Shown: one piece after another, positions 30,050-62,193 of the stretch
Layout of the letters: the number at the start of each line of letters is the position of its first letter
How positions within the stretch are numbered: position 1 is the stretch's first letter
NCBI GenBank assembly: GCA_002104905.1
Contig: MCFE01000046.1
Span: forward strand, 1 to 64,000
Reading direction: 5' to 3'
DNA from: Basidiobolus meristosporus CBS 931.73
Lineage: Eukaryota; Fungi; Basidiobolomycota
Length of the DNA: 64,000 nucleotides
Made by a program: the position numbers and the translations under genes
The notes under the pieces: generated by a model
The model's input: only the letters and a program-made list of their open reading frames with translations
Told to the model about the DNA's origin: nothing
Database searches by the model: none

Positions 30050-30399
30050 TGTTGTAAGAGTCTTGGAGATATTGGAAGTGATTGGGAGAACAAGTATATT
30101 ATGTGGTTTTCACTTAATGATTTATTGAATGTAAAAGTAGTATTTATACTTTTACATGGTCTTGGCATTACAAACACGTAGAATAGGTTAAGGAAGGTCC
30201 CAAGAACATGTGTGCAAAGTTTGGGGCTGTTTGGACAACTTTGAGAATTTTCATGTTCTGGGTACCTGGTATTTTGGTGAAAATATTCTAAGTAAATCCC
30301 GACAAGGAATTTGGTCAGTATTCTCTAGGATTTGAAGGTGATGATCTAAGTGACTAAGTTAGGTGAATATTTAGGTGGAAAATACGAATTTTTACAACA
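30050..30399 (-). repeat. Copia copy 1 3' LTR
   Basis: TG...CA ends; adjacent to the polypurine tract. Confidence 0.93.
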
Positions 30400-30410
30400 C
30401 TCCCACTCAG

Positions 30411-34382: not shown

Positions 34383-34386
34383 AACC

Positions 34387-34735
34387 TGTTGTAAGAGTCT
34401 TGGAGATATTGGAAGTGATTGGGAGAACAAGTAGATTATGTGGTTTTCACTTAATGATTTATTGAATGTAAAAGTAGTATTTATACTTTTACATGGTCTT
34501 GGCATTACAAACACGTAGAATAGGTTAAGGAAGGTCCCAAGAACATGTGTGCAAAGTTTGGGGCTGTTTGGACAACTTTGAGAATTTTCATGTTCTGGGT
34601 ACCTGGTATTTTGGTGAAAATATTCTAAGTAAATCCCGACAAGGAATTTGGTCAGTATTCTCTAGGATTTGAAGGTGATGATCTAAGTGACTAAGTTAGG
34701 TGAATATTTAGGTGGAAATACAAATTTTTACAACA
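34387..34735 (-). repeat. Copia copy 1 5' LTR
   Basis: TG...CA ends; adjacent to the PBS. Confidence 0.93.
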
Positions 34736-35508: not shown

Positions 35509-38500
35509 TGTTGTAAAAATTTGTAATTCCACCTAAATATTCACCTAACTTAGTCACTTAGATCATCACCTTCAAATCCTAGAGAATACTGACCAAATTC
35601 CTTGTTGGGATTTACTTAGAATATTTTCACCAAAATACCAGGTACCCAGAACATGAAAATTCTCAAAGTTGTCCAAACAGCCCCAAACTTTGCACACATG
35701 TTCTTGGGACCTTCCTTAACCTATTCTACGTGTTTGTAATGCCAAGACCAGGTAAAAGTATAAATACTACTTTTACATTCAATAAATCATTAAGTGAAAA
35801 CCACATAATCTACTTGTTCTCCCAATCACTTCCAATATCTCCAAGACTCTTACAACAGGTTATGAGCCCCAAGCTGTCACTCTCTGCAATGTCTACTACT
35901 GCTATTACTGGAATTTTTCCCTCTGCTGAAAAGTTGGATGGATCTAACTACCAAGTGTGGAAGGTGAAGATGAAGATGCTGCTACAAGAAAGAGGCCTTT
36001 GGGATATTGTCATGGGAGAAGAATGCCCTCCTAAAAACGTGGGAGAGGAAGCCTTAAAGTACCAGAAGAAAGAACAAAGTGCCTTTAACTGCATTTGCCT
36101 TAATGTCAAGGACAAATTGCTAATTCAATGCTCAAGAGCAAAAACGGCAAAGAATGCCTGGAAGGCATTAGAAGACACCTACCAGTCATGTTCAGCTGCC
36201 AAGAAAATGTATCTGAGAAGAAAATTCTTTACTACAAAGATGCTGCCAGGAGAAGAAATGAAAAATCTAATTAACAGAATTACCCTGCTGGTAGATGAGA
36301 TGGAATCTGTGGGCGTACCAACTACTGATGAGGATGTGATAGTTACCATCCTGAATAGCCTGACAGACGAGTTTCAGGGCCTTGTATCAGCCCTAGAGTC
36401 CAGAACTGAAGATTTGACCTTAAATTACGTATATGGAAGGCTCCTGGATGAAGAATTAAGAAAATCAAGCGCCAATAAGAAGGAAGAAGAAAATGCTTTA
36501 ATAAGCAATGATAACCAACAAAGGAGGTACCCAAGACCCTACAAAGGCAACAGCAACCTATTTTGCAACTACTGCAAAAGGAAAGGACACACATCAGACC
36601 GGTGTCTCAAAAAGAGAGATTATCAGCAAAAGAAGCCTGAATATGGAAATGCTGCAACAACTGAAGATAGACTATTCATATCTGCACTAAATATGACCAC
36701 AAACAAGGATTCTCAGACGTGGTATATTGACTCTGGAGCTTCTCAACACTTTACACACCAAAAAGAACTTTTTACCCAATATCAAGAAATTCCAATTAAG
36801 AAGGTTTTCATGGGTGACAATAGAACACTTGATGCAGTGGGAGAAGGAACTATCCAAGTAAACCTTAGAAGCAGTGAAGGAAGCCATACACTGACCTTTA
36901 AAGAAGTACTCTATGTACCAGAAATAGCCAAGAACCTACTCTCTGTAAGCAAGGCCACAGCAGAAGGACTCAGTTTCAGTTTTGACAATTCTGGATGCAG
37001 GATCACTGATCAAAATGGTGCTCATATTGCTTTGGGCATCAGAGATCAGAATCTATACAAGTTGACTTATATTCCATCATATCTGGAAGCCAATATAAGT
37101 AACTTAAATGAAGAAACACCAATGCTTTGGCACAGGAGATTTGGGCACATCAATTTTGATTATTTGCGTAAAATGATCAAAGATCAGCTAATTTCTGGAG
37201 TGAAAATTGATCCCCCAGCTAATTTGGAGCACTGTGAAGCCTGCATATATGGGAAACAAGCCAGACAACCGTTCAAGAGCTCTGGGTTAATCAAAACTAA
37301 GAAAAAATTAGATCTAATTCACTCAGATCTGTGTGGACCTATGCAAAATTTATCCTTAGGCGGGATGAAGTATTTAATCACTTTTATTGATGATTATACA
37401 AGATACACATGGGTCTACTTCATGGAGAGAAAGGAAGAAGCTCTGTCTAAGTTCAGGGAGTTTAAAGCCATGGTGGAGAGAGAAACTGGTGAAAAAATCA
37501 AGAAAATACGCTCTGACAATGGTGGAGAATATACCTCAAAACTCTTCATCCACTTCTGCAAAATTCATGGGATAAAGCAAGAGACTACTGTACCATACTC
37601 CCCACAGCAAAATGGAGTAGCAGAACAAGCTAACAGATCAATAATTGATATGGCAAGATCTATGATCCATGATCAAAAATTATCCTATGATTTTTGGGCG
37701 GAATCAGTTGCCACTGCTGTATACCTTAAAAATAGGAGTTATAACAGAATACTTTGTGATTCTACTCCATTTGAAGCATGGTATGGATACAGACCAAGTG
37801 CAGAACATCTAAGAATATTTGGGTGTACAGCATATGCCAAAAAACTGGCCGGAAATCAGTCAAAATTTGAGCCAAAAAGTGTAAAATGCATATTTTTGGG
37901 CTACTGCAATGAGAGTAAGGCATACAGACTCTACAATACCAAAGCAAAGAAGCTTATCAAGTCCAGGGATGTGTTGTTTGATGAAAATTCAAAATTTTCA
38001 CAAAAAATGACATCAGATGATGACGAAAATTTGATCTCAAGTCCACCAATTGTCAGGATTGAATCAGAGCAAAACAATGAAATTTTTTCACTCCAGAGGA
38101 CTCTACAACCGTGGTTCAGCCAGAATCAGTGCCCAGGAATATCCCAGAAGTGATCATTCCAGTATCAAATGCCCGGAGATCAAATCGGACAAGAAATAGC
38201 CCAAATTACTATATCAATGAGGGTACAAACTTAGCCTATGCCTATTCAGTCCATATTGATGAACCCCAGACTGTAAAAGAGGCCCTAAATAGCCCTCAGA
38301 CAAAGTTTTGGAGATCTGCAATGACTGAGGAATATCAGGCCCTGATGGAAAATCAAACTTGGGACTTAGTCAAATTACCAATCAACCAAAAATCAATTGG
38401 ATGCAGATGGGTCTTCAAGACAAAATACAAGGCTGATGGTACAATTGAAAGATACAAAGCAAGACTTGTAGCCAAAGGATACTCTCAAACAAAAGGACTT

Positions 38501-40192
38501 GACTATACTGAGACCTTTGCACCGGTAGCCAAGTTTAATTCCATCAGATTAATATTGGCTATTGCAGCCAAATATAAGTTTTTTATTCATCAAATGGATG
38601 TAAAAACTGCATTTTTGAATGGAGAACTTGATGAGGACGTGTATATGGACCAGCCTGATGGGTTTGTTGACCAAGATAACCCCCATTTGGTCTGCAAGCT
38701 TAAAAAGTCACTATATGGTCTCAAACAATCACCAAGAGCCTGGAATTGCAAGATAGATTCTTATTTGGAATCTTTGAGTTTCAAAAGGAGTAATGCTGAC
38801 TATAGTATATACTATAAGCCAGATAGAGCAAATCCAGTTCTATTAGCTCTATATGTGGATGATCTTATTATAGCCACCAATAACCTAGAAACATTGGAAG
38901 AGACTAAATCCAGCCTATCTAAGGAGTTCAAGATGTCCGATCTAGGAGAACTTAGTTACTACTTAGGGATTAAGTTCTCCATAGACAGAAGTACCCAGAC
39001 TATTACCCTCAGCCAATCCAAGTATATTCAAGATATACTAAAGAAGTACAAAATGGAAGACTGTAAACCGGCAGCTACCCCAATGGAGACAAACCTTAAC
39101 TTGGTCAAAACTCAACCAAATCAAGAGAGCTTGGTGCCATCTGAAAGCCCTGACTTTCCTTATCAATCTATGGTCGGCAGTCTGATGTATATCATGCTTG
39201 GAACACGTCCAGATATCTCATATTCAGTGGGAGTTGTCAGCCAACATAATCAGAACTATGGATCTGATCATATTGCAGCAGTTAAGCGGATTTTTAGATA
39301 CCTAAAAGGAACTGCTGATATTTGCTTAAGATACACTTATAAGGATCAGAACAGGATCTTGTGGGATACTCTGATGCTGATTGGGGACAAAATTTGGAAG
39401 ACAGAAGATCCACCACAGGATACACCTTTCTTTACTGTAAAGGAGCAATTTCATGGATTCAAGAAAGCAACCAACCGTAGCACTTTCTACTACAGAGGCA
39501 GAGTATATGGCAGCCTGTGAAGCTACAAAAGAAGCAATGTGGTTAAGAAAACTCTTTACAGATTTAGGCCTATGTCAAAAAACGCCTATTACTTTATTTC
39601 AAGATAATCAAGGATGTATACAATTAGGTAGAAATCCAACTTTTCATGCTAGAACCAAGCACATAGATATTAGACATCATTTCATACGTGAAGCTATAGA
39701 GAATAACTTAGTTAGCTTAGTTTACTGTCCTACAGATGAAATGATTGCAGACATATTTACCAAACCATTAGCTAGAGACAAGTTTGAAAAATCTTAGGTC
39801 AAAATTAGGACTAGTCAGTATGAACATTTATCTGAGTGGGAGTGTTGTAAAAATTCGTAATTCCACCTAAATATTCACCTAACTTAGTCACTTAGATCAT
39901 TACCTTCAAATCCTAGAGAATACTGACCAAATTCCTTGTCGGGATTTACTTAGAATATTTTTCACCAAAATACCAGGTACCCAGAACATGAAAATTCTCA
40001 AAGTTGTCCAAACAGCCTAAAACTTTGCACACATGCTCTTGGGACCTTCCTTAACCTATTCTATGTGTTTGTAATGCCAAGACCATGTAAAAGTATAAAT
40101 ACTACTTTTACAATCAATAAATCATTAAGTGAAAACCACATAATCTACTTGTTCTCCAAATCACTTCCAATATCTCCAAGACTCTTACAACA
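35509..40192 (+). mobile_element. Ty1/Copia LTR retrotransposon, full length, copy 2 (4684 bp), inserted in an older LTR of the same family
   Basis: LTRs 35509-35857 and 39843-40192; PBS 35858-35869; polypurine tract 39833-39842. Flanks attg|...|attgg match a duplicated attgg of the empty site at 29520-29524. Confidence 0.95.
35862..39831 (+). CDS. Copia Gag-PR-INT-RT-RH, frameshifts at 38083-38088, ~39345 and ~39457
   Basis: Same motifs as copy 1 and near-identical to it; the first in-frame ATG lies inside the PBS. Confidence 0.9.
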
Positions 40193-41470: not shown

Positions 41471-41841
41471 TACTTATGCTAGCTGAATTTGGATGCGAAT
41501 CACGTTGCTTTGAAGTCGATTACGGTATCGCCTAGAGTGTCCTCAACGGCATCCCATATCAGTGAGTCCGGGTCTATCAAGCTACAGAAATTGGGATCGC
41601 AAATCGCCCAGGAATAGAAAGCACATTTAGGGGGTCAAACAGGTTAATTGAGTTAAATCTAGGTTAGACCGAAGGCCTGGACCAAAAGCCTATTAATACT
41701 ATAGACTATATTGGTGCTATCACAGCGATTGGGAGTGGCTGTTGGTGGTATGTTCTGGACAGGTGCAAATAAGGGCTAAGGGAGTGGCTAAGAGTGTGGC
41801 TAAGGGAGTGGTTCTTCAGGGTTGATCAGCTTTATTGGGGT

Positions 41842-44800
41842 TCACATCCAATCACAGATGATGGATTGGCCAAGTGATTTGCACACGGTGCCACTGGCGC
41901 AATGGTTCTGAATTAGTCGTCCGTTGATGCAAACGAAAAAGATTGGAGAGATGTCCGAATCGAGACAACTGTACTGCCCATTGGTACAAACGCCGTCATA
42001 GGTAGGTTTGGCCGGGGTTTCGTTCTGCGTAACAGTGACGGTGTGAATGTTGTGTAGTGTGACTGTCTGGACGTGGGTCACAGTTACGCGACTAGTTTCC
42101 GTCACAGAGAGAACCACGGTGGCGGTAGCGCATTGAGGAGCACATGTTATCTCGGTGGATGGCACAGGGGTTGCTATAAAATGGGCATACAGTCAGAGAG
42201 GGATAACAAGAGGCCGTACTTTGAGAGAGGCTTACCTTTAGTAGTGGTTGGCTCGACAATGATGGTGCGATCGATGATGGTGCGTACAATACCATTACTC
42301 TCAGCCTGGGTCACAATATGTGCCACAGTTTCCGCTGACACCTGTGGTTCAGTGGTTACGGTGTGAATGTTGTCATCAGATTCAGTAGTCGTAACAACAC
42401 GAGCCCCACTTCCTACAGAAACGGTACGCTCCACGATGGTGCGGACATTGCCGTTAGATTCAGTAACAGTGATGGGATGGGCACTACTTTCAATAGAGTT
42501 GGTGGGTTCGACAGTGGCGGTACGATCTACTATGGTGTGAACATTGCCATTAGACTTGGTAACGGTGACGGTACTAGCGCTGTTTTCTACAGAGACAGTG
42601 GGCTGCACAGTGACGGTACGGTCCACCACTGTGTGAATGTTACCATTGGATTCAGTAACTGTCCTTTGTTCAGAAGCTGTGGGTTCGATAGTGACGGTAC
42701 GGTCCACTACGGTGCGGGTATCGCCATTGGATTCGGTAATGGTGATGGTACGAGCATCACTCTCAACAGAGACAGTGACAGTCCAGTCTACTATGGTTTG
42801 AGCATTTCCATTGGATTCAGTAAGTGTTATAGTACGAGCGGCACTTTCAACGGGCACAGTAGGTTCGGCAGTTACGGTGTGAGCGATGCCACTGGATTCA
42901 GTAGTGGTGATATGAGAGCCACTCTCTACAGACACAGTGACAGTACGGTCAGTAATGGTGTGAACCTTACCATCAGTTTCAGCTATAATAATGGTACGAG
43001 CTCCACGCTCAGCTGATACGGTTGGTTGGACTGTGCGGTCAACAACAGTACGAATGTTGCCGTCGGATTCAGTTACCGTAACTGTACGAGGACCATTTTC
43101 TACCGTGTGAACCTTACCATTGGATCCGGTTACAGTCATCGTACCAGCCCCACTTTCTACCGAAACAGTAGGCTGGATGGTAACTGTGCGATCAAGCACA
43201 GTGTGAACCTTACCATTGGAATCCGTTACAGTAATGGTACGAGCACCACTTTCTACAGAAACAGTAGGCTGGATAGTGACAGTACGGTCAATCATGGTGT
43301 GGATATTGCCATTGGACTCGGTTACAGTGATAGTACGAGATCCACTTTCTGCAGCGACTGTTGGTTTGATAGTGACAGTGCGGTCAATCACGGTGTGAAT
43401 ACTGTTATCGGACTTAGTTACAGTAACAGTACGAGCACCACTTTCCACAGAGACTGTAGGTTGGATAGTGACCGTGCGGTCAACAACAGTGTGAGTATTG
43501 TCATTGGATTCAGTTACAGTGATGGTACGAGCCCGTCTTTCAACGGAAACTGTGGACTCAAAAGTCACAGTGTGGTCAACAATGGTATGCGCCTTGCCAT
43601 CGGATTCAGTTACGGTAATAGTATGAGCTCCACTTTCCATAGAAACTGTTGGTTCCACAGTTACGGTGCGGTCTGCAACAGTGTGAACATTTCTTGTTGA
43701 TTCCGTTGTAGTAGTAGTGTGAGCCCCACTTTCAACAGAGACGATGGGATGAATGGTAACGGTAGTGTGAGCATTGCGACCAGATTCTGTTACCATATGA
43801 ACCTTGCCATTGGATTCGGTTGCAGTAACGACGCCAGCTCCACTTTGAACTGATATAGTGGGCTGGATGGTAACTATGCGATCAACAACAGTGTGAACAT
43901 GGCCATTGGATTCAGTTACAGTGATGGTACGAGCCCCACTTTCAACAGAGACGGTGGGCTCAACAGTTACAGTACGGTCGACAATGGTGTGCACCTTGCC
44001 ATCAGATTCTGTTACAGTAACGGTGCGTGCACCGCTCTCAGTAGAAACAGTGGGATGGAGTGTAACAGTGCGGTCGACAACAGTGTGAACATTGCCATTG
44101 GACTCTGTTACAGTGATGGTACGAGCTCCACTTTCAACAGAGACGGTGGACTCAGCAGTTACAGTGCGGTCAACAATGGTGTGTACTTTGCCGTCAGATT
44201 CTGTTACAGTAACGGTGCGTGCACCACTTTCTGTAGAAACAGTGGGATGGATAGTAACAGTGCGATCGACAACAGTGTGAACATGGCCATTAGATTCAGT
44301 TACAGTGATGGTACGAGCCCCACTTTCAACAGAGACGGTGGGCTCAACAGTTACAGTGCGGTCAACAATGGTATGCACCTTGCCATCAGATTCAGTTACA
44401 GTAACAGTGCGTGCACCATTCTCACTAGAAACAGTAGGATGGATAGTAACAGTGCGGTCGACAACAGTGTGAACGTTGCCATTGGACTCTGTTACAGTTA
44501 CGGTATGTGCACCACTTTCTATAGAAGCAGTGGGCTGGAGAGTGATTGTATGGTCAACAACCGTGTGAGCCTTACCATTGGATTCGGTTACAGTAACGGT
44601 GCCAGCCCCACTTTCTACCGAAACAGTAGGCTGTACAGTAACTGTGCGATCAACAACAGTGTGAACATGGCCATTGGACTCAGTTACAGTGATGGTACGA
44701 GCCCCACTTTCAACAGAGACGGTGGGCTCAACAGTTACAGTGCGGTCAACAATGGTGTACACCTTGCCGTCAGATTCTGTTACAGTAACAGTGCGTGCAC

Positions 44801-47800
44801 TGCTCTCAGTGGAAACAGTGGGATGGAGTGTAACAGTGCGGTCGACAACAGTGTGAACATGGCCATTGGGCTCAGTTACAGTGATGGTACGAGCCCCACT
44901 TTCAACAGAGACGGTGGGCTCAACAGTTACAGTGCGGTCAACAATGGTGTGTACTTTGCCGTCAGATTCTGTTACAGTAACAGTGCGTGCACCACTTCCA
45001 ACAGAAACAGTAGGATGGATAGTAACAGTGCGATCAACAACAGTGTGAACATGGCCATTCGACTCAGTTACAGTGATGGTACGAGCCCCACTTTCAACAG
45101 AGACGGTAGGCTCAAGAGTGACAGTGCGGTCAACAATGGTATGCACCTTGCCATCAGATTCTGTTACAGTAACGGTGCGTGCACCATTCTCACTGGAAAC
45201 AGTGGGATGGATAGTAACAGTGCGGTCGACGACAGTGTGAACGTTGCCATTGGACTCTGTTACAGTTACGGTGTGTGCACCACTTTCTATAGAAGTAGTG
45301 GGCTGGAGAGTGATAGTATGGTCAACAACCGTGTGAGCCTTACCATTGGATTCGGTTACAGTAACGGTGCCAGCCCCACTTTTTAGCGAAACAGTAGGCT
45401 GTATAGTAACTGTGCGATCAACAATAGTGTGAACATGGCCATTAGATTCAGTTACAGTGATGGTACGAGCCCCACTTTCAACAGAGACGGTGGGCTCAAG
45501 AGTGACAGTGCGGTCAACAATGGTATGCACCTTGCCGCCATATTCTGTTACAGTAACGGTACGTGCACCGCTCTCAGTAGAAACAGTGGGATGGAGTGTA
45601 ACAGTACGATCGACAACAGTGTGAACATGGCCATTGGACTCAGTTACAGTGATGGTACGAGCCCCACTTTCAACAGAGACGGTGGGCTCAACAGTTACAG
45701 TGCGGTCAACAATGGTGTGTACTTTGCCGTCAGATTCTGTTACAGTAACAGTGCGTGCACTGCTCTCAGTGGAAACAGTAGGATGAATAGTAACAGTGCG
45801 GTCGACAACAGTGTGAAGATGGCCATTAGATTCGGTTACAGTGATGGTACGAGCCCCACTTTCAACAGAGACGGTGGGCTCAACAGTTACAGTGCGGTCA
45901 ACAATGGTATGCACCTTGCCGCCAGATTCTGTTACAGTAACGGTGCGTGCATCACTTTCTGTAGAAACAGTGGGATGGAGTGTAACAGTGCGGTCGACAA
46001 CAGTGTGAACATGACCATTGGACTCTGTTACAGTGATGGTACGAGCCCCACTTTCAACAGAGACGGTGGGCTCAAGAGTGACAGTGCGGTCAACAATGGT
46101 ATGCACCTTGCCGCCAGATTCTGTTACAGTAACGGTGCGTGCACCGCTCTCAGTAGAAACAGTGGGATGGAGTGTAACAGTGCGGTCGACAACAGTGTGA
46201 ACGTTGCCATTGGACTCTGTTACAGTTGCGGTGTGTGCACCATTTTCTATAGAAGCAGTGGGCTGGAGAGTGATAGTATGGTCAACAACCGTGTGAGCCT
46301 TACCATTGGATTCGGTTACAGTAACGGTGCCAGCCCCACTTTCTACCGAAACAGTAGGCTGTACAGTAACTGTGCGATCAACAACAGTGTGAACATGGCC
46401 ATTGGACCCAGTTACAGTGATGGTACGAGCCCCACTTTCAACAGAGACGGTGGGCTCAAGAGTGACAGTGCGGTCAACAATGGTGTGCACTTTGCCGTCA
46501 GATTCTGTTACAGTAACGGTGCGTGCACCACTTCCAACAGAAACAGTAGGATGGATAGTAACAGTGCGGTCTACAACAGTGTGAACATGGCCATTGGACT
46601 CAGTTACAGTGATGGTACGAGCCCCACTTTCAACAGAGACGGTGGGCTCAACAGTTACAGTGCGGTCGACAATGGTGTGCACCTTGCCGTCAGATTCTGT
46701 TACAGTAACGGTGCGTGCATCACTTTCTGTAGAAACAGTGGGATGGAGTGTAACAGTACGATCGACAACAGTGTGAACGTTGCCATTGGACTCTGTTACA
46801 GTTACGGTGTGTGCACCACTTTCTATAGAAGCAGTGGGCTGGAGAGTGATAGTATGGTCAACAACCGTGTGAGCCTTACCATTGGATTCGGTTACAGTAA
46901 CGGTGCCAGCCCCACTTTCTACCGAAACAGTAGGCTGTACAGTAACTGTGCGATCAACAACAGTGTGAACATGGCCATTGGACTCAGTTACAGTGATGGT
47001 ACGAGCCCCACTTTCAACAGAGACGGTGGGCTCAACAGTTACAGTGCGGTCAACAATGGTATGCACCTTGCCATCAGATTCTGTTACAGTAACAGTGCGT
47101 GCACCGCTCTCAGTAGAAACAGTGGGATGGAGTGTAACAGTGCGGTCGACAACAGTGTGGACATTGCCATTGGACTCTGTTACAGTGATGGTACGAGCTC
47201 CACTTTCAACAGAGACGGTGGACTCAGCAGTTACAGTGCGGTCAACAATGGTGTGTACTTTGCCGTCAGATTCTGTTACAGTAACGGTGCGTGCACCACT
47301 TTCTACAGAAACAGTAGGATGAATAGTAACAGTGCGGTCGACAACAGTGTGAACATTGCCATTGGACTCTGTTACAGTTACGGTGCGTGCACCACTTTCT
47401 ATAGAAACAGTAGGCTGGAGAGTGACAGTATGGCCAACAACCGTGTGAACCTTACCATTGGATCCGGTTACAGTCATCGTACCAGCCCCACTTTCTACCG
47501 AAACAGTAGGCTGGATGGTAACTGTGCGATCAAGCACAGTGCGAACCTTACCATTGGGTTCAGTTACAGTAACGGTACGAGCTCCACTTTCTACGGATAC
47601 AGTGGGCTGAATAGTGACCGTACGGTCAACAACGACGTGAACCGTGCTATCCGAATCAGTCACAGTGACGGTGCGAGCTCCACTGTCGACGGATTTAGTA
47701 GGTTGAATAGTAATCGTGCGGTCAACAACAGTGTGGGCCTTGCCATCAGATTCAGTTACGGTCACGGTTGGCTCAGTAACTGTCACATCGACAGATGTTT

Positions 47801-50800
47801 CCCGTTGGATGGTCACTTCACTGGATGGCTTCTCTGTTACGGAATGCTTGTAGGTTACTGTTGGCTCGGTAACGGTCACTGTAGGTTCGGAGACAGTCAC
47901 GTCAATTGATGTATCATGTCGTATGGTCACCTCCTTCGAGGCCTCTTTTGTAACAGAGTGCTTATAGGTCACAGCAGGCTCAGTTACGGTGATAGTTGGC
48001 TCAGTAACTGTCACATCGACAGATGTTTCCCGTTGGATGGTCACTTCACTGGATGGCTTCTCTGTTACGGAATGCTTGTAGGTTACTGTTGGCTCGATAA
48101 TGGTCACTGTAGGTTCGGAGGCCGTCACTTCAATTGACGTATCATGTCGTATGGTCACCTCCTTCGAGGCTTCTTTCGTGACAGAGTGCTTATAGGTCAC
48201 AGTGGGTTCAGTTATGGTGACAGTTGGTTCAGTAACTGTCACATCGACAGATGTTTCCCGTTGGATGGTCACTTCACTGGATGGCTTCTCTGTTACGGAA
48301 TGCTTGTAGGTTATTGTTGACTCAGTGACGGTCACTGTAGGTTCGGTGACAGTGATGTCAATTGATGTATCATGTCGTATGGTCACTTCCTTCGAGGCCT
48401 CTTTCGTGACGGAGTACTTATTGGTCACCGTCGGCTCAGTAACCGTAACAGTTGGCTCGGTGATTGTTATATCCACTGAGGCCACTCGTTGAATAGTCAT
48501 CTCGCTGGATGGCTTCTCCGTTACGGAATGTTTGTAGGTTACTGTTGGCTCAGTGATGGTCACTGTAGGCTCGGTGACAGTTATTTCAACCGATGTATCA
48601 TGTTGAACAGTTACCTCCTGGGATGCTTCCTTTGTAACCGAGTGCATGAAAGTCACGGTGGGTTCAGTTACGGTGACAGTTGGCTCGGTAATGGTTACAT
48701 CGACTGATGTTTCCCGCTGGATAGTCACTTCACTAGATGGCTTCTCAGTAACCGAATGCTCATAGGTTACCGTTGGCTCGGTAATAGTTGCGGTAGGCTC
48801 AGTGATAATCACTTCGATTGATGTGTCATGTTGAATGGTCACCTCCCGTGAAGCTTCCTTGGTGACAAAGTGCTTAAAAGTTACAGTAGGCTCGGTCATC
48901 GTGAGGGTTGGCTCGGTAATCGTAACATCGATTGATGCTTCTGGTTGAATAGTCACCTCGGCCGATGGTTTTTTGGTTATGGATTGACGGTAGGTTATTG
49001 TTGGCTCAGTGACGGTTACAGCTGGTTCAGTTAGTGTAATATTAATTGATACATCTGGGTGAACTGTGACTTCCCTAGAAGGTTGCTTAGTTATAGAATG
49101 CTCATAGGTCACTGTAGGTTCAGTCACTGTAATCGTTGGCTCAGTGATGGTAATCCCACTAGAAATGGTGGGTCTTTCCGTTATATTGTTGTGGGGTTTG
49201 ATCGTAACCGAGTAGAGATCGGTGCTGGTGGGTTCAGTTACAGTGATGGTCGGCTGCTTTGATAGTAACATTACTCGAAACAACAGGCTGCACTGTCATC
49301 TTATGTCCCTCCTGGGTGTAAGAATAAACCATTGTTTGAGTAGGCTCAGTGATCGTCACTTGGGGTTCCGTAACCGTAGTCTCAATAGAGATGGTAGGCT
49401 GCACTATCACTTCAGCCGAAGTATTGCTCGACACAGAACGTTCACCGGAAGAGTGCACAGAGTCACTCATGGCAGAGCCTTGACTGCTTACGGAGTGAGG
49501 TTTCTCATTCGCCTTCGTGTGGTGATTTTCTCTGGAGGAATACTCCGAATCAGCATGAGACTCGCTTTTAACGGACTTGTGCTTGGCGTGAGTTACCCCG
49601 GAAGAGTTAGACTTCCATGTAGGTATCGAGTGATGACCTTCACTGCTAGAACGCTTGGATTCAGTTGGATGCAGAGATTCCTCGGGATGGCTACTCTTAG
49701 CAGTGGCATGAGTTGTGTGAGCTCCGCTTGATGAATGATACCTTTCGCTATGCGTCAAATGGCGACTTTCACTGCTAGATTGCTCAGACTCGGTGTGGTG
49801 AGCCGATTTCTCTGAATGCTCACTCTTGACAGGAGCGTGGTTGGTGAGAGTTTCGCTTGAGTAATGTGACTCTTCAGTCGGCTTCGTATGGTGACTCTCA
49901 CTGCTAGAATGCTCGAAATCAGTGGACTTCTCACTGTGAACGGATCCATGCTTAGCTGGAGTTCCACTTGAGGAATGAGGCTTCTCTTGATGACTTTCAA
50001 TAGAAGAATGCTCAGAATCGGTGTGATGAGCAGGCTTCTCGGAATGATGACTCTCAACAGTCACATGCTCAGAATGGGTCTTGGAAGGTGTCAGATGGCG
50101 AATTTCACTGCTCGGATGCTCAGAATCCGAATGATGAGCTGATTTCCTGGTATGCTCACTCTTCACGGTTATGTGCTCTGAGTGAGGTGCACTTGAAGAA
50201 CGAGGCTTCTCAGTGGACTTCGCATCATGACTGCTACTGTTGGAATGCTTGGAATCCATGCGATGAGCCGATTTCGCAGAATGCTCACTCTTGATGGACA
50301 CATGCCTCGTGTAGGTTCCACTTGAGATGTGTGGCTTCCCAGTAGGCTCCACATGGCGACTTTCACTGCCAGCATGCTCGGATTTCGTAGGAATAAAAGA
50401 TTTCTCAGTATGCTTGCTATTATCAGACTCATGTTTAGCTGGAGTCCCGCTTGAGGAGTGAGGCTGCTCATGATGACTTTCCCTAGAAGAATACTCAGAA
50501 CCGGTGTGATGTGCAGAGTCCGCAGTGTGGTGGCTCGTGACAGTCTCATGTCTAGAGTAAGTCTCGGTAGAAGTCAGATGGCGACTTTCACTGCTAGATT
50601 GCTCAGCATCCGAATGATGAGCAGGTCTCACGGCATGCCCACTCCTAATGGACCCGTGCTTTTTTTGAGTCACACTTGAGAAATGAGGCTTCTCAGTGGG
50701 CTTCACGTGGAGGCTTTTGCTGCTAAAATGGTTGGAATCAGTCTTGTGAACCGATTTCTCCGTATGCTCAGTCTTGGCGGATGTGTGCTTAGTATGAATT

Positions 50801-53800
50801 CCGCTTGAGGAATGAAGTTGCTGAGTAGACTTCTCGGGATGACCTTCAGCAGAAGAATGGTCAGTTTCGGTGTGAGGAGCAGAGTTCTCGGAGTGGTGAC
50901 TCTTTACAGTCTTATGCACGGAGTGGGTTTCGGAAGGTGTCAGAGGGTGATTCTCACGGCTAGAATGCTCGGAGTGGGCGGGGTGGATTGATATCTCAGT
51001 ATGCTCACTCTTATTTGACTCGTGCTTGGCGGGGGTTTCACTTGAAGAATGAGGCTTTTCGGTAGGTTTTACGTGGTGATTTTCACTGTCAGAATGCTTG
51101 GAATCCGTGTGATGAACCGATTTCTCCGAATGCTCACTCATGACAGACACGTGCTTGGTAAGAGTTCCAGTCGAGGTGTGAGCTTCCTCAGTGGGCTTCG
51201 GGTGATGATTTGCACTCGTAGAATGCTCGGAATCAGTGGGCTTGGCCGATTTCTCAGTGGGCTCACTCTCAACGGACTCATGGCTAGTGTGAGTTCCACG
51301 CGAGGAACGGGGTTTCTGAGTAGGCTTCTCGTGACGGCTATCACCAGAAGAATGCCCGGAATCGGTGTGAAGAGTTGATTTCTCAGAAGAGTGGCTCTTG
51401 ACAGTCTTATGCTCAGAGGGAGTCTCGGAAGGAGTCAAGCGGTGATTCTCACTACTAGAATGTTGAGCTGATTTCTCCGAGTGGTGACTCTTGTGCTGAG
51501 AGTGAGTTTCGGAAGGTGTTTTATGGTGATCCTCACTAGAGTGCTCAGAATCGGTGTGATGAGCACGTTTCTCGGAATGATGACTCCGGACAGTCTCATG
51601 CTCAGAGGGAGTCTCAGAAGACATCAAATGGCGATTTTCACTGTTAGAATGCTCAGAACCCGAGTGATGAGCTGATTTCACAGTATGCTCACTGCTAATG
51701 GACTCGTGCATTGTGTGAGTTTCACTTGGAGAATGAGGCTTCTCAGTGGGCTTCGCCTGGCTCCTTTCAGTGCTAGAGTGCTCGGAATCCGTGTGATGAG
51801 CAGATTTCTCGGAATGGTGACTCTTAAGTGACTCTTGCTCAGAGTGAATCTTGGAAGGCGACAAATTTGTGGGAGCTGCACTTGAGGAATAAGGCTTTTC
51901 GGTGGGCTTCACATGGTGACTTTCACTGTCGGAGTGCTTGGAATCAGTGGAACGAACTGATTTCTCGGAATGCCCACTCTTGACAGACACACGTTTGGTG
52001 TGAGTTACACCGGGGGGATGAGGCTCTTCCGTGGGTTCAATACGGTGACTCTCAGTGTTCGAATGCTCAGAATCAGTCGTATGAGCCGATTTTCCAGTAT
52101 GCTCACTCCTGGCAGACTTGTGCTTGGCCGGTGTTCCACCAGAAGAATGCGGCTTTTCCGTGGGCTTCACATGACGACCCTCACCGCTGGAATGCTCAGA
52201 TTCGGTATGGTGAGCCGACTTCGCGGTATGCTCACTCTTGGCTGACTCGTGCTTAGCAGGTGTTACAATGGAAGAATGCGGCTTTCCAGTGGGTTTCCTA
52301 TGATGACTTTCACTACCAGAATGCCCAGGCTCAGTGGGACGAGCAGATTTCTCAGTATGCTCACTCTTAGCTGACTCGTGCTTAGCAGGTGTTACGCCAG
52401 AAGAACGAGGCTTCTCCGTAGACTTCACGTAGTGACTTTCACTGCTGAAATGTTCGGAATCGGTGGAACTAGCCGATTCCTCAGTATGCTCACTTTTAAC
52501 GGATTCGTGCTTGGCGTGGGTTCTACCGGAGGAAGGTGACTTTTCGGTAGGCTTCTCGTGATGACTCTCACCAGAAGAATGCTCAGAATGTTGACTCTTG
52601 AAAGTCACATGCATGGAGTGAGTCTCGGAAGGTGTCAGGTGGTGATTCTCACTGCTAGAATGCTCAGAGTCCGAATGATGAGTCGATGTCGCAGTATGCT
52701 CACTCTCAACGGACTCATGCTTTGAGTGGATTACACTCGTGGTCTGTGGCTTCTCCGTAGGCTTCGCAAGGTGACTTTCATTGCTAGAATGCTCAGAATC
52801 AGTGGGTCTAGCTGATTTCTCAGCATGTTCGCTGCTAACGGACTCGTGCTTAACTTGAGTCTCACTTGAGGAGTGAGGTTTCTCGGTAGTAGGTACCTTG
52901 TGATGACTATCACTAGAGGAATGCTCAGAATTGGTGTTGAGAGCAGACCTCACGGAATGGTGGCTCTTCACAGTCTCATGTTCAGAGTGAGTCTTAGTAT
53001 GCGTCAAAGCATGATTTTCACTGTTGGAATACTTGGAATCCGTGTGACGAGCCGATTTCTTCGGATGCTCACTTTCGATAGACACGTGTTTAGTCAAAGT
53101 TCCACTTGAGGTATGAGGTTTCTCGGTAGGTTTCGAATGCTGACTTTCACTGTCGGAGTGCTTGGAATCAGTGGGCTTAGCCGATTTCTCAGTGTGCTCA
53201 CTCTTCGCGGACTTGCGTTTAGCGTGGGTTCCACTCGAGGAATGGGATCTCTCGGTAGGCTTCCCGTGCTGAGTTTCGTTAGTAGAACGTTTGGAATCGG
53301 TGTGATGAGCGGATTTCTCAGAATGATGACTCTTGACAGACTCTCGCTCAGTGTGAGTTTTAGAAGGTGACAAATTTGGAGGAGCTGCACTTGAGGAATG
53401 AGGCTTTTCGGTAGGTTTTACGTGGTGATTTTCACTGTCAGAGTGCTTGGAATCCGTGTGATGAACCGATTTCTCCGAATGCTCACTCATGACAGACACG
53501 TGCTTGGTAAGAGTTCCAGTCGAGGTGTGAGCTTCCTCAGTGGGCTTCGGGTGATGATTTGCACTCGTAGAATGCTCGGAACCAGTGGGCTTGGCCGATT
53601 TCTCAGTGGGCTCACTCTCAACGGACTCATGGCTAGTGTGAGTTCCACGCGAGGAACGGGGTTTCTGAGTAGGCTTCTCGTGACGGCTATCACCAGAAGA
53701 ATGCCCAGAATCGGTGTGAAGAGTTGATTTCTCAGAAGAGTGGCTCTTGACAGTCTTATGCTCAGAGGGAGTCGAGCGGTGATTCTCACTACTAGAATGT

Positions 53801-56800
53801 TGAGCTGATTTCTCCGAGTGGTGACTCTTGTGCTGAGAGTGAGTTTCGGAAGGTGTTTTATGGTGATCCTCACTAGAGTGCTCAGAATCGGTGTGATGAG
53901 CAGGTTTCTCGGAATGATGACTCCGGACAGTCTCATGCTCAGAGGGAGTCTCGGAAGGAGTCGAATGGTGATCTTCGCTGTTAGAATGCTCAGAACCCGA
54001 ATGATGAGCCGATTTCACAGGATGTTCACTCTTTACGGACTCGTGCCTAGTGTGTATTCCACTTGAGGAATGACGCTTCTCGGTAGGCTTCCCTTGATGA
54101 CTTTCACTAGAAGAACGCTCAGAGTTGGTGTGATGAGCCGATTTCACAGATTGGCGACTCGTCACAGTCTTGTGGTTTGTGTGAGTTACACTTGAAGAGA
54201 GAGGCTTCTCAGTAGGCCTCGAGTGGTGGCTTTCCCTACCAGAATGCTTGGATTCAGATGGATTCGCCGATTTCACACTATGTTCACTCTTTACCGATTC
54301 CTGCTCAACGTGGGTTCCACTTGAGGAATGAGGCTTCTCTTGATGACTTTCAATAGAAGAATGCTCAGAATCGGTATGATGTGCTGGTTTCTCCGAGTGA
54401 TGACTCTTTGCGGAATCGTGTTCAGTGTGGGCTTCACTGGATGAATGAGGCTTCTGGGTTTGCTTCGTGTGCTGAGTTTCACTGCTAGGATGCTCGGAAT
54501 CCGTGGGCCTAGCCGATTTCTCAATATGCTCGCTCTTATCAGACTCATGGCTCGGAGTGGACTCTACTTGAGGAAAGTGGCTTCTCGGTAGGTATTGCGT
54601 GACGATTCTCGCTAGCAGAGTGTTCAGAATCCGTGTGATGATCGGTGGGCTTCACACGTGGTGGCTTTTGCTGCTAGAATGGTTGGAATCAGTCTTGTGA
54701 ACCGATTTCTCCGTATGCTCAGTCTTGGCGGATGTGTGCTTAGTATGAATTCCGCTTGAGGAATGAAGATGCTGAGTAGACTTCTCGGGATGGCTTTCAG
54801 CAGAAGAATGGCCAGATTCGGTGTGATGAGCAGAGTTCTCGGAGTGGTGGCTCTTCACAGTCGCATGCTCAGAGTGTGACTCGATAGGTGTTAAGTGGCG
54901 ATTCTCACTGTTAGAATGCTCAGAAACCGAATGATGAGTTGATTTACTGGTATGCTCACTCTTGATACTAATATGCTTTGTGTGGGCTCCACTTGAGCTA
55001 TGTGGCTTCTCAGTGGATTTCGAATGCCGACTTTCACTACTAACATCATGCTTCGTGTGAGTTTCACTTGAAGAGGGAGGCTTCTCAGTGGGCTTCACAT
55101 GCTCCCTTCCATTGGTGGAATGCTTTGAATTGGAGGGATGCCCCGAATTCTCCGAACTCTCCCTCTTAACGGACTCGTGCTCATTGTGTGTTCCGCTGGA
55201 GGAACGCGATTTCTCAGTAGGCTTGGCCCGAGGACTTTCATTAGAAGAGTTCTTGGAAATGGCGTGATGTCCAGATTCAGTATGCTCACTTTCCACTGGC
55301 TTTTGTTTAGTGTGAGTTACACTCAAGGAGTGAGGTTTTTCGGTAGGCTCCACACGCTGGCTTTCGCTGGTAGAATGCTCGGATTCGGAGTGATGAGCTG
55401 ATTCCGTAGAATGCTTACTGTGTACAGTCTTACCCTTAGTATGGGTTTCACTTGGAGAATAAGGCTTCTTAGTAGGTGTCGCATGCTGGCCATCACTGCG
55501 AGTATGCTTAGAATCAGTAGGATGGGCCGATTCCTCAGAATGCACAGTATGAGTTTCACCTGAGGAATGAGACTTGGTAGGCGTCATATACTGACTATCA
55601 CTGTGAAAATGCTTAGAATCAGTGGTATGTGCTGAATTCTCAGTATGCAGACTCCCAATAGTCTCATGCTTGGTGTTCGAGTCACTAGATGAACGAGACT
55701 TCTTCGTGGACTTCACATGCTGATTTTCACTGCGAGAATGCTGGGATACAGTGGAATGAAGACTCTTAACGGACTCGTGTTCAGAGTGGGCTTCACTAGA
55801 AGAATGAGGCTTGTCAGTTGGCTTTGTGTGCTGAGAAGAATGACCAGATTTTATAGGATGAGCTGATTTCTCGCTATCCGTGTTTGTGGCAGACTCGTGT
55901 TTAATAGTGAGTCCCACTTGAGGAATGAGGCTTCCTGGTAGGCGTCAAGTGGTGACTATCAGTGGGATGGACCGAATTCTCAGAATGCTCACTTGTAGAC
56001 TTGCTCTTGGTATGATTTTTGATGGGCGATTGAGATATCGGCATGGACTTTGCGTGGTGAGTTTTCGTTTCAGCTCCCTCTGTATCTGAATGATAAGCAG
56101 ATTGCCCTGAAGATTCGCTCCGTTTAGACCTGAGCTCACTGTTGTGTTCACTGGTGGTTTGTTTTCCAGTAGGCTTCACATCGCTTGTACTCTGTTCAGA
56201 AGTTGGGTGGGCCGAGGGAATCTTGGAGTTGGTCATGTACTTTTTCCGGATTGACTCTGGTACGTTGGCACAATTTGCACCTCCATAGGGAACACACATC
56301 TGGCCATCGGGGCAGTATTGAAGTTGAGGCTTTCCGTCTGGACAACCAATGAATTTGGAACTGACAAATGGCTCGAGGCATTTCGGAACGCATTTTACCG
56401 CTGTGCTTGATGTTATTTCTGCCTTATGGGTTAGGCTATGAGAGTGATCGGGGTGTGTACTGTGGCTTTCGCTTGCTGAATTGGATTTGTCGGTAGGTTT
56501 TGTTTGGATACTTGCAGGGTGAGAATGTTCAGTTTGGGTTGGATGATCCTCACTATGAGAATCCTCTGATTCGGTATGATTACCCGAGTTCTCGGTACTC
56601 TCACTCTTAGTTGGTTCGTGCTCACTGTGGTACAGGCTTGAGGAATGCGACGTCACTGTTGAATCCGTGTGATGGTGTTCACCGGTAGAATGCGCAGATG
56701 GTGAATCTGATTTCTCAGGGCGATTACTTGGACTAGACGCTTCAGATTCGGATGATTGTGAGGTACTGGTGGGCTTCGCAACATGGTTTATGCTGGTTTT

Positions 56801-58030
56801 TGAGATAGACTTGTGTTTTGGTCGAGATGGAGACTTGGTTTGGGATCCAGGCTTCTTAGCCCTGCACTGGTGTTTCCCGTTGACATCCGTGCAGACGTAG
56901 CCCTCTCCACAAGTGTTATAGGTAGGAGGCTGGTTGGACTGACAAACCCTAATCATCGGAGAGACGCCGGAATCCACGCAGCCGGACTTACAATCCGGGC
57001 TGATGGATGGTAATATTGAGGGAGTTTCTACTGCCGCCACTTGATCGGCACATTCAATGTCAATCCACAGTCCTTCCCAAGTAAACAGATCAACACAAAT
57101 TGCATGCTCTATGCAACTTTGAACCGTCCACTTGCCGTCTTTGCATGTAGCATACAAAGGCCCGGTGTCATCATCGAGACACTTGATGTTCACAGGGCAC
57201 AGGTTCGTAGTGGTGTATGTGGTCTTTTGGGTTGTTTTCGGTACCATGGTGGCTACCTGCGTGGTAATGCTCAGGGGCTTTCCCGATCCGGCCGGAATAG
57301 GATGCAAATCTTCACAAACGCCGATATTTGGATTGCACCATTGATGATCGTTGCAAGGGAAATTCTGCCACTCGTTGTTAATGCACCGCTGTTGTAATGA
57401 TTGGCCAGCACAGGTGATCCAGCCATTGGTGCATTCGCCGACATTGGGAGGGGGGTACACCGTAGGCCGATTGGAGTTCATTTTATAGCATTGGGGTATC
57501 ATAAGACCGTTGATGCAGTACGAGTCGCCGGGACATGTGTATTCATACACAACTCCGTGGTCGCAATACTGGTAAGTGTTGTGGTTGCATGTGCTCTTGA
57601 AGGTGCTGGCGTCACACCGTTTCCTTTGGACGAGTGTGTGATGCTCCCGTTGGTACTTGACTTCGTTCTTGACTGACGTGACTTTTCCCACTTTCTCGTG
57701 CTTTACCGGAGTGATCCACTCGCAAGAGACAAGGTACTTGCTCTCTTGGACACATGTGTACGGTTGGCCATTATTGGCTACGCCACAGGTGTCGAGCTCC
57801 CACACCCCATTGACACACTTCCGGTACTGGTTATGATCCAAACACTGAACCTCGTTGTCGTTACAATGCCCGGGCAAAATGGTCACCACGGCGCCGTGTG
57901 AAAAGGTCGTCAGGTGTTGGACGGTGTTGATGCCAGTATTCAGGTCCGTGACAACCTTGGCAGGGATCGATAGGACGTGCCGAGCACTCAGTGCCGCTAC
58001 ACATAGTGCAGATAGTATGCTTCGCCCCAT
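41842..58030 (-). CDS. Giant secreted repeat protein, ~5,370 aa: signal peptide, 6 Cys-rich CBM19-like modules, His/Ser-rich repeats, Thr/Val repeats, C-terminal CBM19-like module; one intron (42235-42174) and four small frameshifting insertions
   Basis: ATG at 58030 begins MGRSILSALCVAALSARHVLS. ORFs 55901-58201, 54652-55917, 49234-54276, 42174-49283 and 41842-42165 join into one repeat-continuous protein after removing +1 (~55904), +2 (~54655), +1 (~54550) and +1 (~49257) bases and splicing a GTAAGC...TAG intron. Confidence 0.85.
42330..47760 (-). repeat. Coding tandem repeat, 96-bp / 32-aa unit (GARTVTVTESDGKVHTIVDRTVTVEPTVSVES), ~55 units
   Basis: A marker variant recurs at 44593, 45361, 46321 and 46897 (spacings 768, 960, 576 = 8, 10, 6 x 96). 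Confidence 0.93.
47760..49400 (-). repeat. Coding tandem repeat, 114-bp / 38-aa unit alternating A/B (228-bp period), ~13 units
   Basis: tgtcacatcgacagatg recurs at 47781, 48009 and 48237; unit TEPTVTVTEPTVTYKHSVTEKPSSEVTIQRETSVDVTV. Confidence 0.9.
49400..56200 (-). repeat. His/Ser/Glu/Thr/Lys-rich coding repeats (43-aa and 36-aa units) with internal segmental duplications
   Basis: Units such as HESAKSEHTAKSAHHTESEHSSGEGRHVKPTEKPHSSGGTPAK; 51049-51378 recurs at 53398-53727 (+2349). Confidence 0.9.
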
Positions 58031-59861
58031 GTTGAAGTCGGCGTGTATCCCCAGCCGGGGTGCATATATATACCCCTCTGGCTGTGCTCCAACCCCCTCG
58101 TTTTTCTCTAGGGACTTTGCGACTTCGAGCAGCTGCAATGACCGGATTCGATTGGGATGCCGGCTATGTTTAGAGCCATATCGATTGGGGTGTGTTTCCA
58201 AAAGAAGCGGATTGTTTTACCCGATCTTGCTTCGTGTATTGCTTGGCCACTAGCTTCATTCATCGGTGGTGTGGACTACAGTATGTAAATGGAATTCTAT
58301 GCGTAGACAGGGGAGGGCCAATACACTCGATAGCCGAGCAATTCCCATCTTGAGACAGATTCATTGGTTAGGTATGAACACGACTCTGGTTCCGGCTGTT
58401 GGGATGATGTGATGCGGTCGAGCATTCTATTGGTCGAGGTGGCAAGTTGTTTTGGAGGCCAGACAGCCTCCCGAGTCATATACCTGGTCACCGAGACAGT
58501 GATATGGGTGACGGCTCGGGGTTAAAGTGCACCCAGATTACGGAGCACACGCTCACCCACCGACAAGGGCTGAGCGCTACCGCCGCGAAGAGACGCGGAT
58601 CAGCATCGCCAGCGTTCCCCTTCTATGCGAGAGCCAGAATATCATCGCCCTGGCCCGGATATGGCATATGGATATCAAGCAACAACGTGAGCAGCATGTC
58701 ATATCAACAACCATATGCCAACTCAGGCAATCCAAATGATCATCACTTGGATTTTGGCAACGCATCAGGCAATCCACTTCTGATAGCCTCATTTAAAGAA
58801 GTCAGTAGTCCTAGCCTCCAGGTTCGTTTCCGGCAATAACACTCCATTTCCAATCCCAAACCAGGCAACCCTGCTCACTAGCGAGGTTCGCTTTTTATAA
58901 CAGCCTATCTCAACATTGGTTCAGCATGGCGTTTGATTGGACCACGGTGCCGAATTTCTGGGTGGGTCCAAGAATGTACAATCCGAATATATTCGTATAT
59001 CACGTCATGGGATTTTTCAAGCCTAGAACTTCGGACGGTGGCGAAAACAAGTACACATATATATATATGTATATCATTCACTCGCAGTCTGACCAGAATG
59101 TAGTGGTAGTCGCTTAACTATTTTATGGTTGGTCAACAGGTTTGATTCCCCTTTTGGTTGGTAATCTCCAAGCAACATTCCCAACCCAAATGCTTTCAAG
59201 CCTTGTCTAAATGAGTTCGATGCCCCCTTAATATACGTTTTACGCCATATATGTAGCTGATTGTGAATATGGGTTCAGTGAAGCAAGATACATGCGCTGG
59301 GTCCGTGGTTTTTTGAGTGGTAGGGCCCCCAGCAATATTCCAAGCATGCCAGGTCCAAGAGTTCTCCGGATTTTGCTACGGTTTGTCTCCACCAATGGGT
59401 GCTGTCACTACGACATGCTGTCCTTGACGAGTATGCTTGCACTCTTTGGTCTACAGAGTTTCAACACGTGTCTGCGCACTTTTTCCACACAAGGCTCGCG
59501 AATGCGGAATCCACAGCATCAAGGTTTGACAATCCACCTCCAAAGGGCTCGATTTCGGTCATACCAATCTGCCATGCAGGATCGCTGATTGAAATGGTAC
59601 CTGGAGATTGGGATCTATCAATTTCGATGATTTGCGCCGGACGGCTAGAATTATATGATGATTAGATCTAGCTCACTTGGATCAATGCAAAGTTTATCCC
59701 TAGGCAGACAGGAATATTTTGCCATGTTCACTGGTGCCTGCACAACACACATTTAGCCGTGTCTCATTGAATGTAAGAAAGATGTGTTGGCCATACTCAG
59801 GAAATACAAAGCTGCATTGTGATGTGGGGCTAGCAAAGAGCCAAGAAATTCAGCTCCCTTT

Positions 59862-61495: not shown

Positions 61496-62193
61496 CTCTA
61501 GGCAATCCAATGCCACTTGTCTGAGCAAAATGTTCCTACTTTTAGTCAGGTTAAGGTTTTGTCATTTATAACAAATCTGGAGTTTCCTTATTTCTTGGCT
61601 AGAGTCTAGTTCATTGGGACAGCTTCACTGTGTGTCCATATTAGGCTCAGGGACAGTTACTTGCATCATAAAGACTGTATTTGGGTTATGTATAATGATC
61701 CACTATGATTCAAGTTAAAGCTTAGACATTTATAGAAGACCTGGTGTTTCCATATCCTTAGGTAACAGTATAACTCATTTAGACCACTTCACTACTTGTC
61801 TATTATTGTCTCAGGTACAGTTGCTTCAATTATATAGACTCTTTATGATGGTAAATAGCATGACCTACTTTGTACCAAGTTTAGGTTTTATCATTAATGC
61901 CTGATCAGGTGTTTCCTCAATTCCTGGCTTTGTGGCACAAACAACATAGCCAAAAAGGTTTTCACTCTACTCTGAACAGTGCTGACCTACCCCCACATGA
62001 ACAATGTCTGTTTAGTTATTAGAATCTACAAAACTGATCCAGAATAGTCATCTTTGTCTTCTTTTAGCATCAATGACTTTCTTTGGTTCATATGATGCTT
62101 GGTAGCTACTCTGAATGCAAATCTACTGATTTAGATTGATACAGCTGATTTTGTATTATTGGAATATACTGATAGAACAGAGATTACCACTTT

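Follow-up and report, generated by a model that had tools for sequence, protein, structure and literature searches.

Do the interrupted open frames on the minus strand of a Basidiobolus contig encode one giant secreted protein, and what could such a protein be for? The question is raised by positions 58030 to 41842 of a 64,000-nucleotide (nt) stretch of Basidiobolus DNA, hereafter called the window. An earlier note, made from the letters alone, had read this locus as a single secreted protein with chitin-binding-like modules at both ends. Our analysis favours, with a probability of about 0.6, a real gene of two exons, to all appearance intact, from a fungus like Basidiobolus meristosporus, coding for a secreted matrix or wall-surface protein.

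The gene occupies 41842..58030 on the minus strand, as do all features given below unless stated otherwise. Its start codon lies at 58030-58028 and its stop codon at 41844-41842. The frame map, the short reads, the intron and length arithmetic together give two exons with about 5,373 codons once the assembly's extra letters are left out, and the corrected protein is 5,373 amino acids (aa) long. All the parts listed in the earlier note are present: a leader, six Cys-rich modules, His/Ser-rich repeats, arrays of 38-aa and 32-aa units, and a terminal module.

The leader (residues 1-21, MGRSILSALCVAALSARHVLS; 57968..58030) is a signal peptide by Kyte-Doolittle hydropathy, and it is the sole segment of the whole protein in which the 19-residue mean exceeds 1.6. 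By the same measure the protein has no glycosylphosphatidylinositol (GPI) signal and no membrane segment. Its C-terminus lacks a hydrophobic tail: hydropathy in exon 2 peaks at 1.15, within the Cys module, and the chain ends in ...GQSIICDWM. Hydropathy thus agrees with a single giant secreted protein that is free of both kinds of anchor.

Integrity of the reading frame

Five open pieces follow one another from 58030 down to 41845: 58030-55904 in frame 0, 55944-54655 and 54651-49237 in frame 1, 49295-42177 in frame 2, and 42192-41845 again in frame 1. Otherwise, no long open frame interrupts them in the frame map. Read base by base, the window sequence breaks the reading frame five times, through what look like four small insertions and one intron.

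Contigs from three public DNA runs (X1, X2 and X3) were aligned to 52101-58100, an interval that contains three of the breaks. X1 and X2, both from a single sample, agree with the window almost throughout, and X3 carries another organism label; the contigs are Illumina-derived, since their loose ends carry Illumina adapter sequence. The first break, a false frameshift caused by one extra letter at 55907, is omitted throughout the contig depth of all three runs. The same letter is missing from the independent assembly of B. meristosporus CBS 931.73, where the protein ORX89337.1 continues through the site as GTHIKHES. Two further errors, the 2-nt insertion GT (GTGTG for GTG) at 54653-54654 and one extra letter at 54549-54554, are omitted in all of the X1 and X2 contig depth. 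Jointly these two create a false in-frame stop, and the extra GT at 54653 is also absent from a paralogous copy inside the gene at 50693-50970. Because the short-read contigs lack the extra letters, we take all three frameshifts to be assembly errors. Programmed ribosomal frameshifting was considered, as two of the breaks end on stop codons, and was ruled out by reads without the extra letters.

The fourth break would be an error of the same kind. Here frame 1 switches to frame 2 across overlapping open frames, with a probable extra letter after ATCAAA at 49254..49257. The corrected reading, VTIK-Q-PTITVTEPT, fits and continues the repeat, from which we infer an assembly error; since a homologous-protein search with the 200 aa beyond the break at 49255 returned no relatives, the correction keeps that standing.

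The fifth break is of another nature. A segment of 62 nt (42174..42235) has the form AAAG/GTAAGC...CTGAC...TTTTATAG/CA, with GT..AG borders, and its excision from 42235 to 42174 joins frame 2 to frame 1 exactly. From the DNA sequence it reads as a canonical phase 1 intron. Gene models of B. ranarum were tried as a guide to intron signals and set aside, as the few "introns" they contain are all artefacts that the predictor made at contig ends. The earlier note had ascribed the frame breaks to indels, which holds for the three extra letters exposed by the short-read contigs and probably for the fourth, and does not hold for the intron.

The His-rich region contains two recent segmental duplications, 51039-51823 versus 53388-54160 (92% identical) and 50693-50970 versus 54642-54921 (90%). 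The false frameshifts adjoin these duplications, as expected if polishing failed in repeated sequence. Within the His-rich repeats, the same-sample short-read contigs also carry an in-frame 12-nt insertion at 53760-53767, which adds four residues relative to the window. Elsewhere in the window, an intact P-type cation ATPase of 1,104 aa occupies a single open frame (13975-17289, minus strand); therefore, outside repeats the assembly is not generally indel-prone.

Selection on the gene

Once corrected, the pieces can be read through all 5,373 codons without a stop. Compared unit against unit, the 32-aa repeats show a synonymous divergence (dS) of 0.5-0.9 and a nonsynonymous divergence (dN) of about 0.08-0.12, for a dN/dS of 0.13-0.17; in the 38-aa units dN/dS is 0.09-0.18. 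High dS combined with low dN between units indicates that the repeats are old and that their amino-acid sequence is kept by purifying selection. Relative to CBS 931.73, the first 2,262 coding bases of the window differ at five positions (0.2%), and the roughly 3.9 kb upstream of the gene diverges by about 1.6%.

These data bear on whether the giant protein is produced at all. The window as given, with four frameshifts and an in-frame stop, could be read as a decaying pseudogene or as several separate genes, and the public annotation offers just one partial model of 754 aa. However, the three frameshifts that could be tested are all missing from the short-read contigs, not one nonsense substitution is found along the coding sequence, strong purifying selection acts on the repeats, and the 754-aa public model ends solely because its contig ends. 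Together, the reads, the lack of nonsense codons and the dN/dS values rule out a pseudogene, and we find it highly improbable that the protein is never made as one chain.

Cysteine modules at both ends

The N-terminal head (56843..57883) is built from five 6-Cys modules, located at 57701-57883, 57467-57634, 57293-57451, 57029-57217 and 56843-57010; it is defined by invariant Cys, sub-threshold Pfam matches and fold matches to CBM14 proteins. A His/Ser-rich spacer of 150 aa (56411-56842) separates it from the sixth module (56249..56410; CBM_14 E 0.04). The seventh, C-terminal module (41848-42012) was placed by Pfam, hhalign and hydropathy; it ends in IICDWM, directly followed by the stop codon, and is encoded by exon 2 (41845..42173) after a Thr/Val-rich stretch of about 60 aa. 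All six Cys are invariant in the 32 modules of the protein family described below. When aligned to a profile of the 31 N-terminal-type modules, the C-terminal module is matched by hhalign with a probability of 96.6% (E 5e-10), so the same module type is present at both ends, as the earlier note had proposed.

How close are these modules to known chitin-binding domains? The best score for CBM_19 (PF03427) is 17.6 bits (module 4) against a gathering score of 20.1, and the best for CBM_14 (PF01607, peritrophin-A) is 15.9 bits (C-terminal module) against 22.1. The C-terminal module reaches E 0.015 with CBM_14 and E 0.027 with CBM_19, both sub-threshold. Across the 32 family modules, CBM_19 and CBM_14 are the commonest Pfam matches with six modules each at E up to 1 (best CBM_14 E 0.0098), and any other family matches three modules at most. 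Taken as a whole, the 709-aa N-terminal piece matches no Pfam family at E up to 1. The only strong E-values of the whole-piece scan, for tRNA_edit and CARM1, were rejected: no stretch passes by itself, and they are artefacts of Thr/Val-repeat composition.

The first two Cys of the modules are spaced by 3-8 residues, the C-terminal module having spacings of 6-11-9-5-8; in canonical CBM14 (peritrophin-A) domains, the first spacing is about 13-20 residues. Modules 1, 3 and 4 retain the aromatic residue of the C-x-x-G-x-W motif.

The AlphaFold2 model of the head has a mean predicted local distance difference test score (pLDDT) of 57.9, with modules 2 and 3 at 75-85. Searched with Foldseek against the Swiss-Prot part of AlphaFold DB, it returns CPG-2 at the top (E 1.4e-7), together with CBD-1, Drosophila chitinase 10, obstructor-E and peritrophin-48; Dictyostelium spore-coat proteins rank below the multi-CBM14 proteins. 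Among 48,161 chains of solved structures searched with VIA-align, CBM14 domains take eight of the top eleven places (Der p 23, Der f 23, EHEP, the chitotriosidase CBM14, two Avr4, Blo t 12 and tachycitin) and cover modules 1, 3 and 4. Their Z-scores of 3.1-4.5 are low, as expected for domains of about 50 residues. A shape search of the ESM Atlas brings up arthropod CBM_14 proteins, baculovirus VP91, chitotriosidase-like proteins and a cluster of Zoopagomycota GH18 proteins with CBM_19. Against the Protein Data Bank (PDB), Foldseek finds nothing significant with the head model, and the module profiles yield only chance matches to complement factor H among PDB sequences.

Judging by predicted fold, we conclude that the modules are probably divergent members of the CBM14/19 clan, each match being individually weak, and that chitin binding is a reasonable inference. 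The CBM19 match of the Cys/Gly pattern put forward in the earlier note thus stands as sub-threshold similarity to CBM_19 and CBM_14 with a similar predicted fold; in the Pfam CBM_19 scan proper, the modules miss the cut-off.

The same results can be turned the other way. The modules could be generic disulfide-knotted domains that bind protein, polyphenol or some other glycan, the protein being a mucin-like coat or biofilm matrix with no link to chitin. Every Pfam match being sub-threshold would suit this, and so would the chance-only profile matches and the lack of a significant Foldseek match in the PDB; moreover, EHEP, a top structural match, binds phlorotannin according to its PDB title. 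Yet three independent structure libraries rank chitin-binding CBM14/19 proteins first, and the aromatic of the C-x-x-G-x-W motif is kept in three modules. We therefore hold modules unrelated to chitin to be unlikely, though an option of some weight.

Repeat arrays and a predicted rod

Two arrays of Thr/Val repeats precede the intron. Thirteen 38-aa units (TVTVTEPTVTYKHSVTEKPSSEVTIQRETSVDVTVTEP), of two types in alternation, span 47769..49250. About 55 units of 32 aa (TVTVTESNGxVHTVVDRTVTxxPTVSxESGAR) then span 42237..47768, strictly regular over 47768-43929 and degenerate over 43928-42237, with 41 consecutive units of exactly 32 residues. Within the 32-aa unit, about 19 of 32 positions are invariant although synonymous sites are saturated. 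Such fixed unit length and invariant positions fit a folded repeat.

We modelled ten 32-aa units with AlphaFold2, using the in-phase windows of the array itself as the alignment. The resulting model has a pLDDT of 83.4, a predicted template-modelling score (pTM) of 0.83 and three strands per unit. In VIA-align, it matches CsgA with Z 19.9 and SufD with Z 18.2 (root-mean-square deviation of 2.8 angstroms over 226 residues); beta-solenoid matches at Z 15-20 include the SRRP adhesin and PfbA, and pectate-lyase-like helices are matched as well. A fungal protein, the Candida glabrata wall-protein domain Awp3b, is matched with Z 12.7. Foldseek against the PDB finds nothing significant with the repeat model.

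The 32-aa array is probably a beta-solenoid rod, with one repeat per coil. Allowing 0.48 nm for each coil, the Thr/Val repeats (some 2,300 aa, in about 55 units of 32 aa and 13 of 38 aa) would give the rod a length of roughly 30 nm. The idea of the 32-aa repeats as a flexible tether thus gives way to a predicted folded beta-solenoid.

Opposite the 32-aa array, the plus strand has long open reading frames of 497 aa (43893-45386) and 826 aa (45429-47909). We rejected both as genes: they only mirror the repeats in antisense, and gene callers could be misled by them.

The histidine-rich chain

A long region of the protein, rich in His, Ser, Glu, Thr and Lys, is repeated with a period of 43 aa (129 nt) over 49453..56248. 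Counted with the spacer at 56411-56842, the His-rich chain comes to about 2,350 aa, of which 363 are His; the earlier note had seen this region and put it at about 2,200 aa. Its composition is S 24%, H 15%, E 11%, T 11% and K 9%. The calculated net charge is close to 0 at pH 7.5 and rises to +236 at pH 6, +342 at pH 5 and +617 at pH 3. The chain is a polyampholyte that becomes a strong polycation in acid. It is also a potential multivalent metal binder.

Family and distribution

With the first 400 residues as a query, an exhaustive search of 1.84 billion representative proteins finds only six relatives, all in Basidiobolus, and none outside it. Relatives, for which the earlier note had suggested looking, therefore exist within the genus and nowhere else in this set. 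One, from B. meristosporus CBS 931.73, represents the same gene and is deposited as the 754-aa "hypothetical protein, partial" ORX89337.1, which is truncated because its contig ends inside the His-rich repeats. The five others belong to B. ranarum AG-B5, at 24-32% identity, and each sits at or close to the end of a short contig (2.9-7.1 kb) in a fragmented assembly.

In each of the five B. ranarum homologues, a hydrophobic leader at the N-terminus is followed by a head with its modules in the same order, and across the six proteins none of the 24 Cys of modules 1-4 varies. One of the five, P0006, also has a His/Ser repeat of the same KPTEKPHSS type. Homologous-protein searches with the C-terminal exon and with the 2,339-aa repeat piece were empty. 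For the 32-aa repeat, a protein atlas search gave no match scoring above 0.83, and no relative was detectable anywhere. We found no paper on the protein or its Basidiobolus family. By these searches, the protein belongs to a small family that is restricted to Basidiobolus, a genus of the Zoopagomycota.

Surroundings of the gene

A 12-nt tandem repeat (GGCTAAGGGAGT) in 3.2 copies lies at 41774-41811, about 30 nt 3' of the stop codon. On the other side, CBS 931.73 carries a 4.69-kb copia element (L004:1399-6088) about 3.9 kb upstream of the gene, where the window has an empty site (61936-61942). This element is 99% identical to two copia copies within the window (30046-34735 and 35509-40192), and this identity points to recent transposition.

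The two window copies are in inverted orientation (30411-34514 on the minus strand, 35730-39520 on the plus strand). In both, the polyprotein frame is split 81 aa ahead of the reverse-transcriptase domain, which would be either one frameshift inherited by both or a normal frame shift of the element.

Comparison with described proteins

Peritrophins and intestinal mucins are found in the animal gut and range in length from a few hundred residues to about two thousand. Those of insects resemble the Basidiobolus protein in having a signal peptide, several 6-Cys modules of chitin-binding type, long low-complexity linkers that can be O-glycosylated, and no anchor; the predicted folds of the modules match, if weakly, as well. 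The peritrophin type, with a signal peptide, at least two such modules, low-complexity linkers and no anchor, is thus found here at the level of architecture only. Peritrophin and mucin linkers are rich in Pro, Thr and Ser, whereas those of the Basidiobolus protein are rich in His, Ser, Glu and Lys, and peritrophins have no beta-solenoid array. In addition, the Cys spacing differs, the Basidiobolus modules fall below the Pfam CBM_14 threshold with no detectable sequence relationship, and the protein is several times larger.

In the Foldseek search, the head is matched best by the Caenorhabditis elegans eggshell proteins CPG-2, CPG-1 and CBD-1 (E 1.4e-7 to 1.7e-5), secreted multi-CBM14 proteins of a chitin-containing protective shell. 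They measure 491-1,319 aa, lack the His-rich and 32-aa regions, and share no detectable sequence similarity with the Basidiobolus protein. The view that no protein of such architecture has been described was too strong, since peritrophins, intestinal mucins, CPG-2 and CBD-1 share its logic (PMC5865745).

Among fungi, Avr4 (CBM14) and the CBM19 modules of Zoopagomycota GH18 proteins are secreted and fall in the same clan. They are single small modules or attached to enzymes, however, and no giant repeat protein flanked by such modules is among them. The GPI adhesins Als, Flo, Epa and Awp are likewise wall-surface proteins with long Ser/Thr-rich tandem repeats, and one of them, Awp3b, has a beta-helical A-domain that resembles the model of the repeats. 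In contrast to them, the Basidiobolus protein has binding-type modules at both ends and no GPI signal, and Pfam finds in it no PA14, Ig-like, Flo11 or Awp-type N-terminal domain. An adhesin of the Als/Flo/Epa type was accordingly rejected, as the GPI signal and the N-terminal ligand-binding domain were both looked for and neither was present.

Finally, the predicted fold of the 32-aa array would be that of bacterial CsgA, the SRRP binding region, PfbA and autotransporter passengers, which have extracellular adhesive or fibre-forming roles of their own. These beta-solenoids have no sequence relationship to the Basidiobolus array, in which the predicted coil has 32 residues and Thr-lined faces.

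Proposed role

We propose that the terminal modules would anchor the protein non-covalently on chitin microfibrils and bridge them in the manner of peritrophins, in which multiple chitin-binding domains are split by mucin-like domains and which are proposed cross-linkers of chitin fibrils (PMC5865745). The target could be the chitin of the fungus's own wall or spore wall, possibly that of arthropod cuticle. Rod and His-rich chain would together form a thick hydrated outer layer or a glue, responsive to pH and metals. A role in the wall or spore coat and a role as glue are both plausible and compatible with the evidence; we rate the general reading, that of a chitin-associated matrix, above the specific one of a glue.

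The glue can be phrased more narrowly. The capilloconidia of Basidiobolus attach to the exoskeletons of insects by adhesive tips (PMC10964425), and the protein could be the glue of these tips, its terminal modules gripping cuticle chitin and the spore wall while the His-rich chain forms the sticky droplet. That it is secreted, unanchored, restricted to Basidiobolus and equipped with the same module type at each end would suit such a function. On the other hand, insects have a waxy epicuticle with no exposed chitin. A tip glue is distinctly unlikely in our estimate.

Basidiobolus spores also transit the acid guts of vertebrates (PMC10964425). A bolder version makes the protein a rod-and-coil capilloconidium adhesive in which the chain of 363 His, a sticky gel at neutral pH, would swell into a polycation in the acid gut and free the spore once the insect had been eaten. 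This proposal we regard as speculative and more doubtful still.

Several observations tell against the chitin-associated matrix protein that we prefer. On the side of the gene, the frame correction near 49255 is drawn from the repeat pattern, and the intron and the single transcript are read from genomic sequence. Assembled contigs lose rare variants, so there may be a minor broken allele. On the side of the modules, none reaches any Pfam gathering score and their Cys spacing departs from that of canonical peritrophin-A; the VIA-align Z-scores stay at 3-4.7 with a head model of pLDDT 57.9, and all TM-scores are low. For the whole family, chitin binding and localisation are predictions. As for the rod, its alignment sets the repeat against itself and contains no homologues from elsewhere, and AlphaFold2 has a known bias towards solenoids when given repeats.

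Giant genes of this kind escape current annotation, since short-read assemblies break in the repeats and the fuller assembly carries false frameshifts; the public record of the present one is a 754-aa fragment. Should the terminal modules bind chitin, fungi would have in this protein their own counterpart of the animal peritrophins, one that greatly exceeds in size the peritrophin-type proteins of our comparison. Such a counterpart would join a long beta-solenoid rod to a His-rich chain that responds to pH and metals. We know of no molecular data on the make-up of the Basidiobolus spore wall or on its spore glue, and the protein is a candidate for both: for a component of the thick spore wall that survives the gut, and for the glue by which the spores stick to insects.

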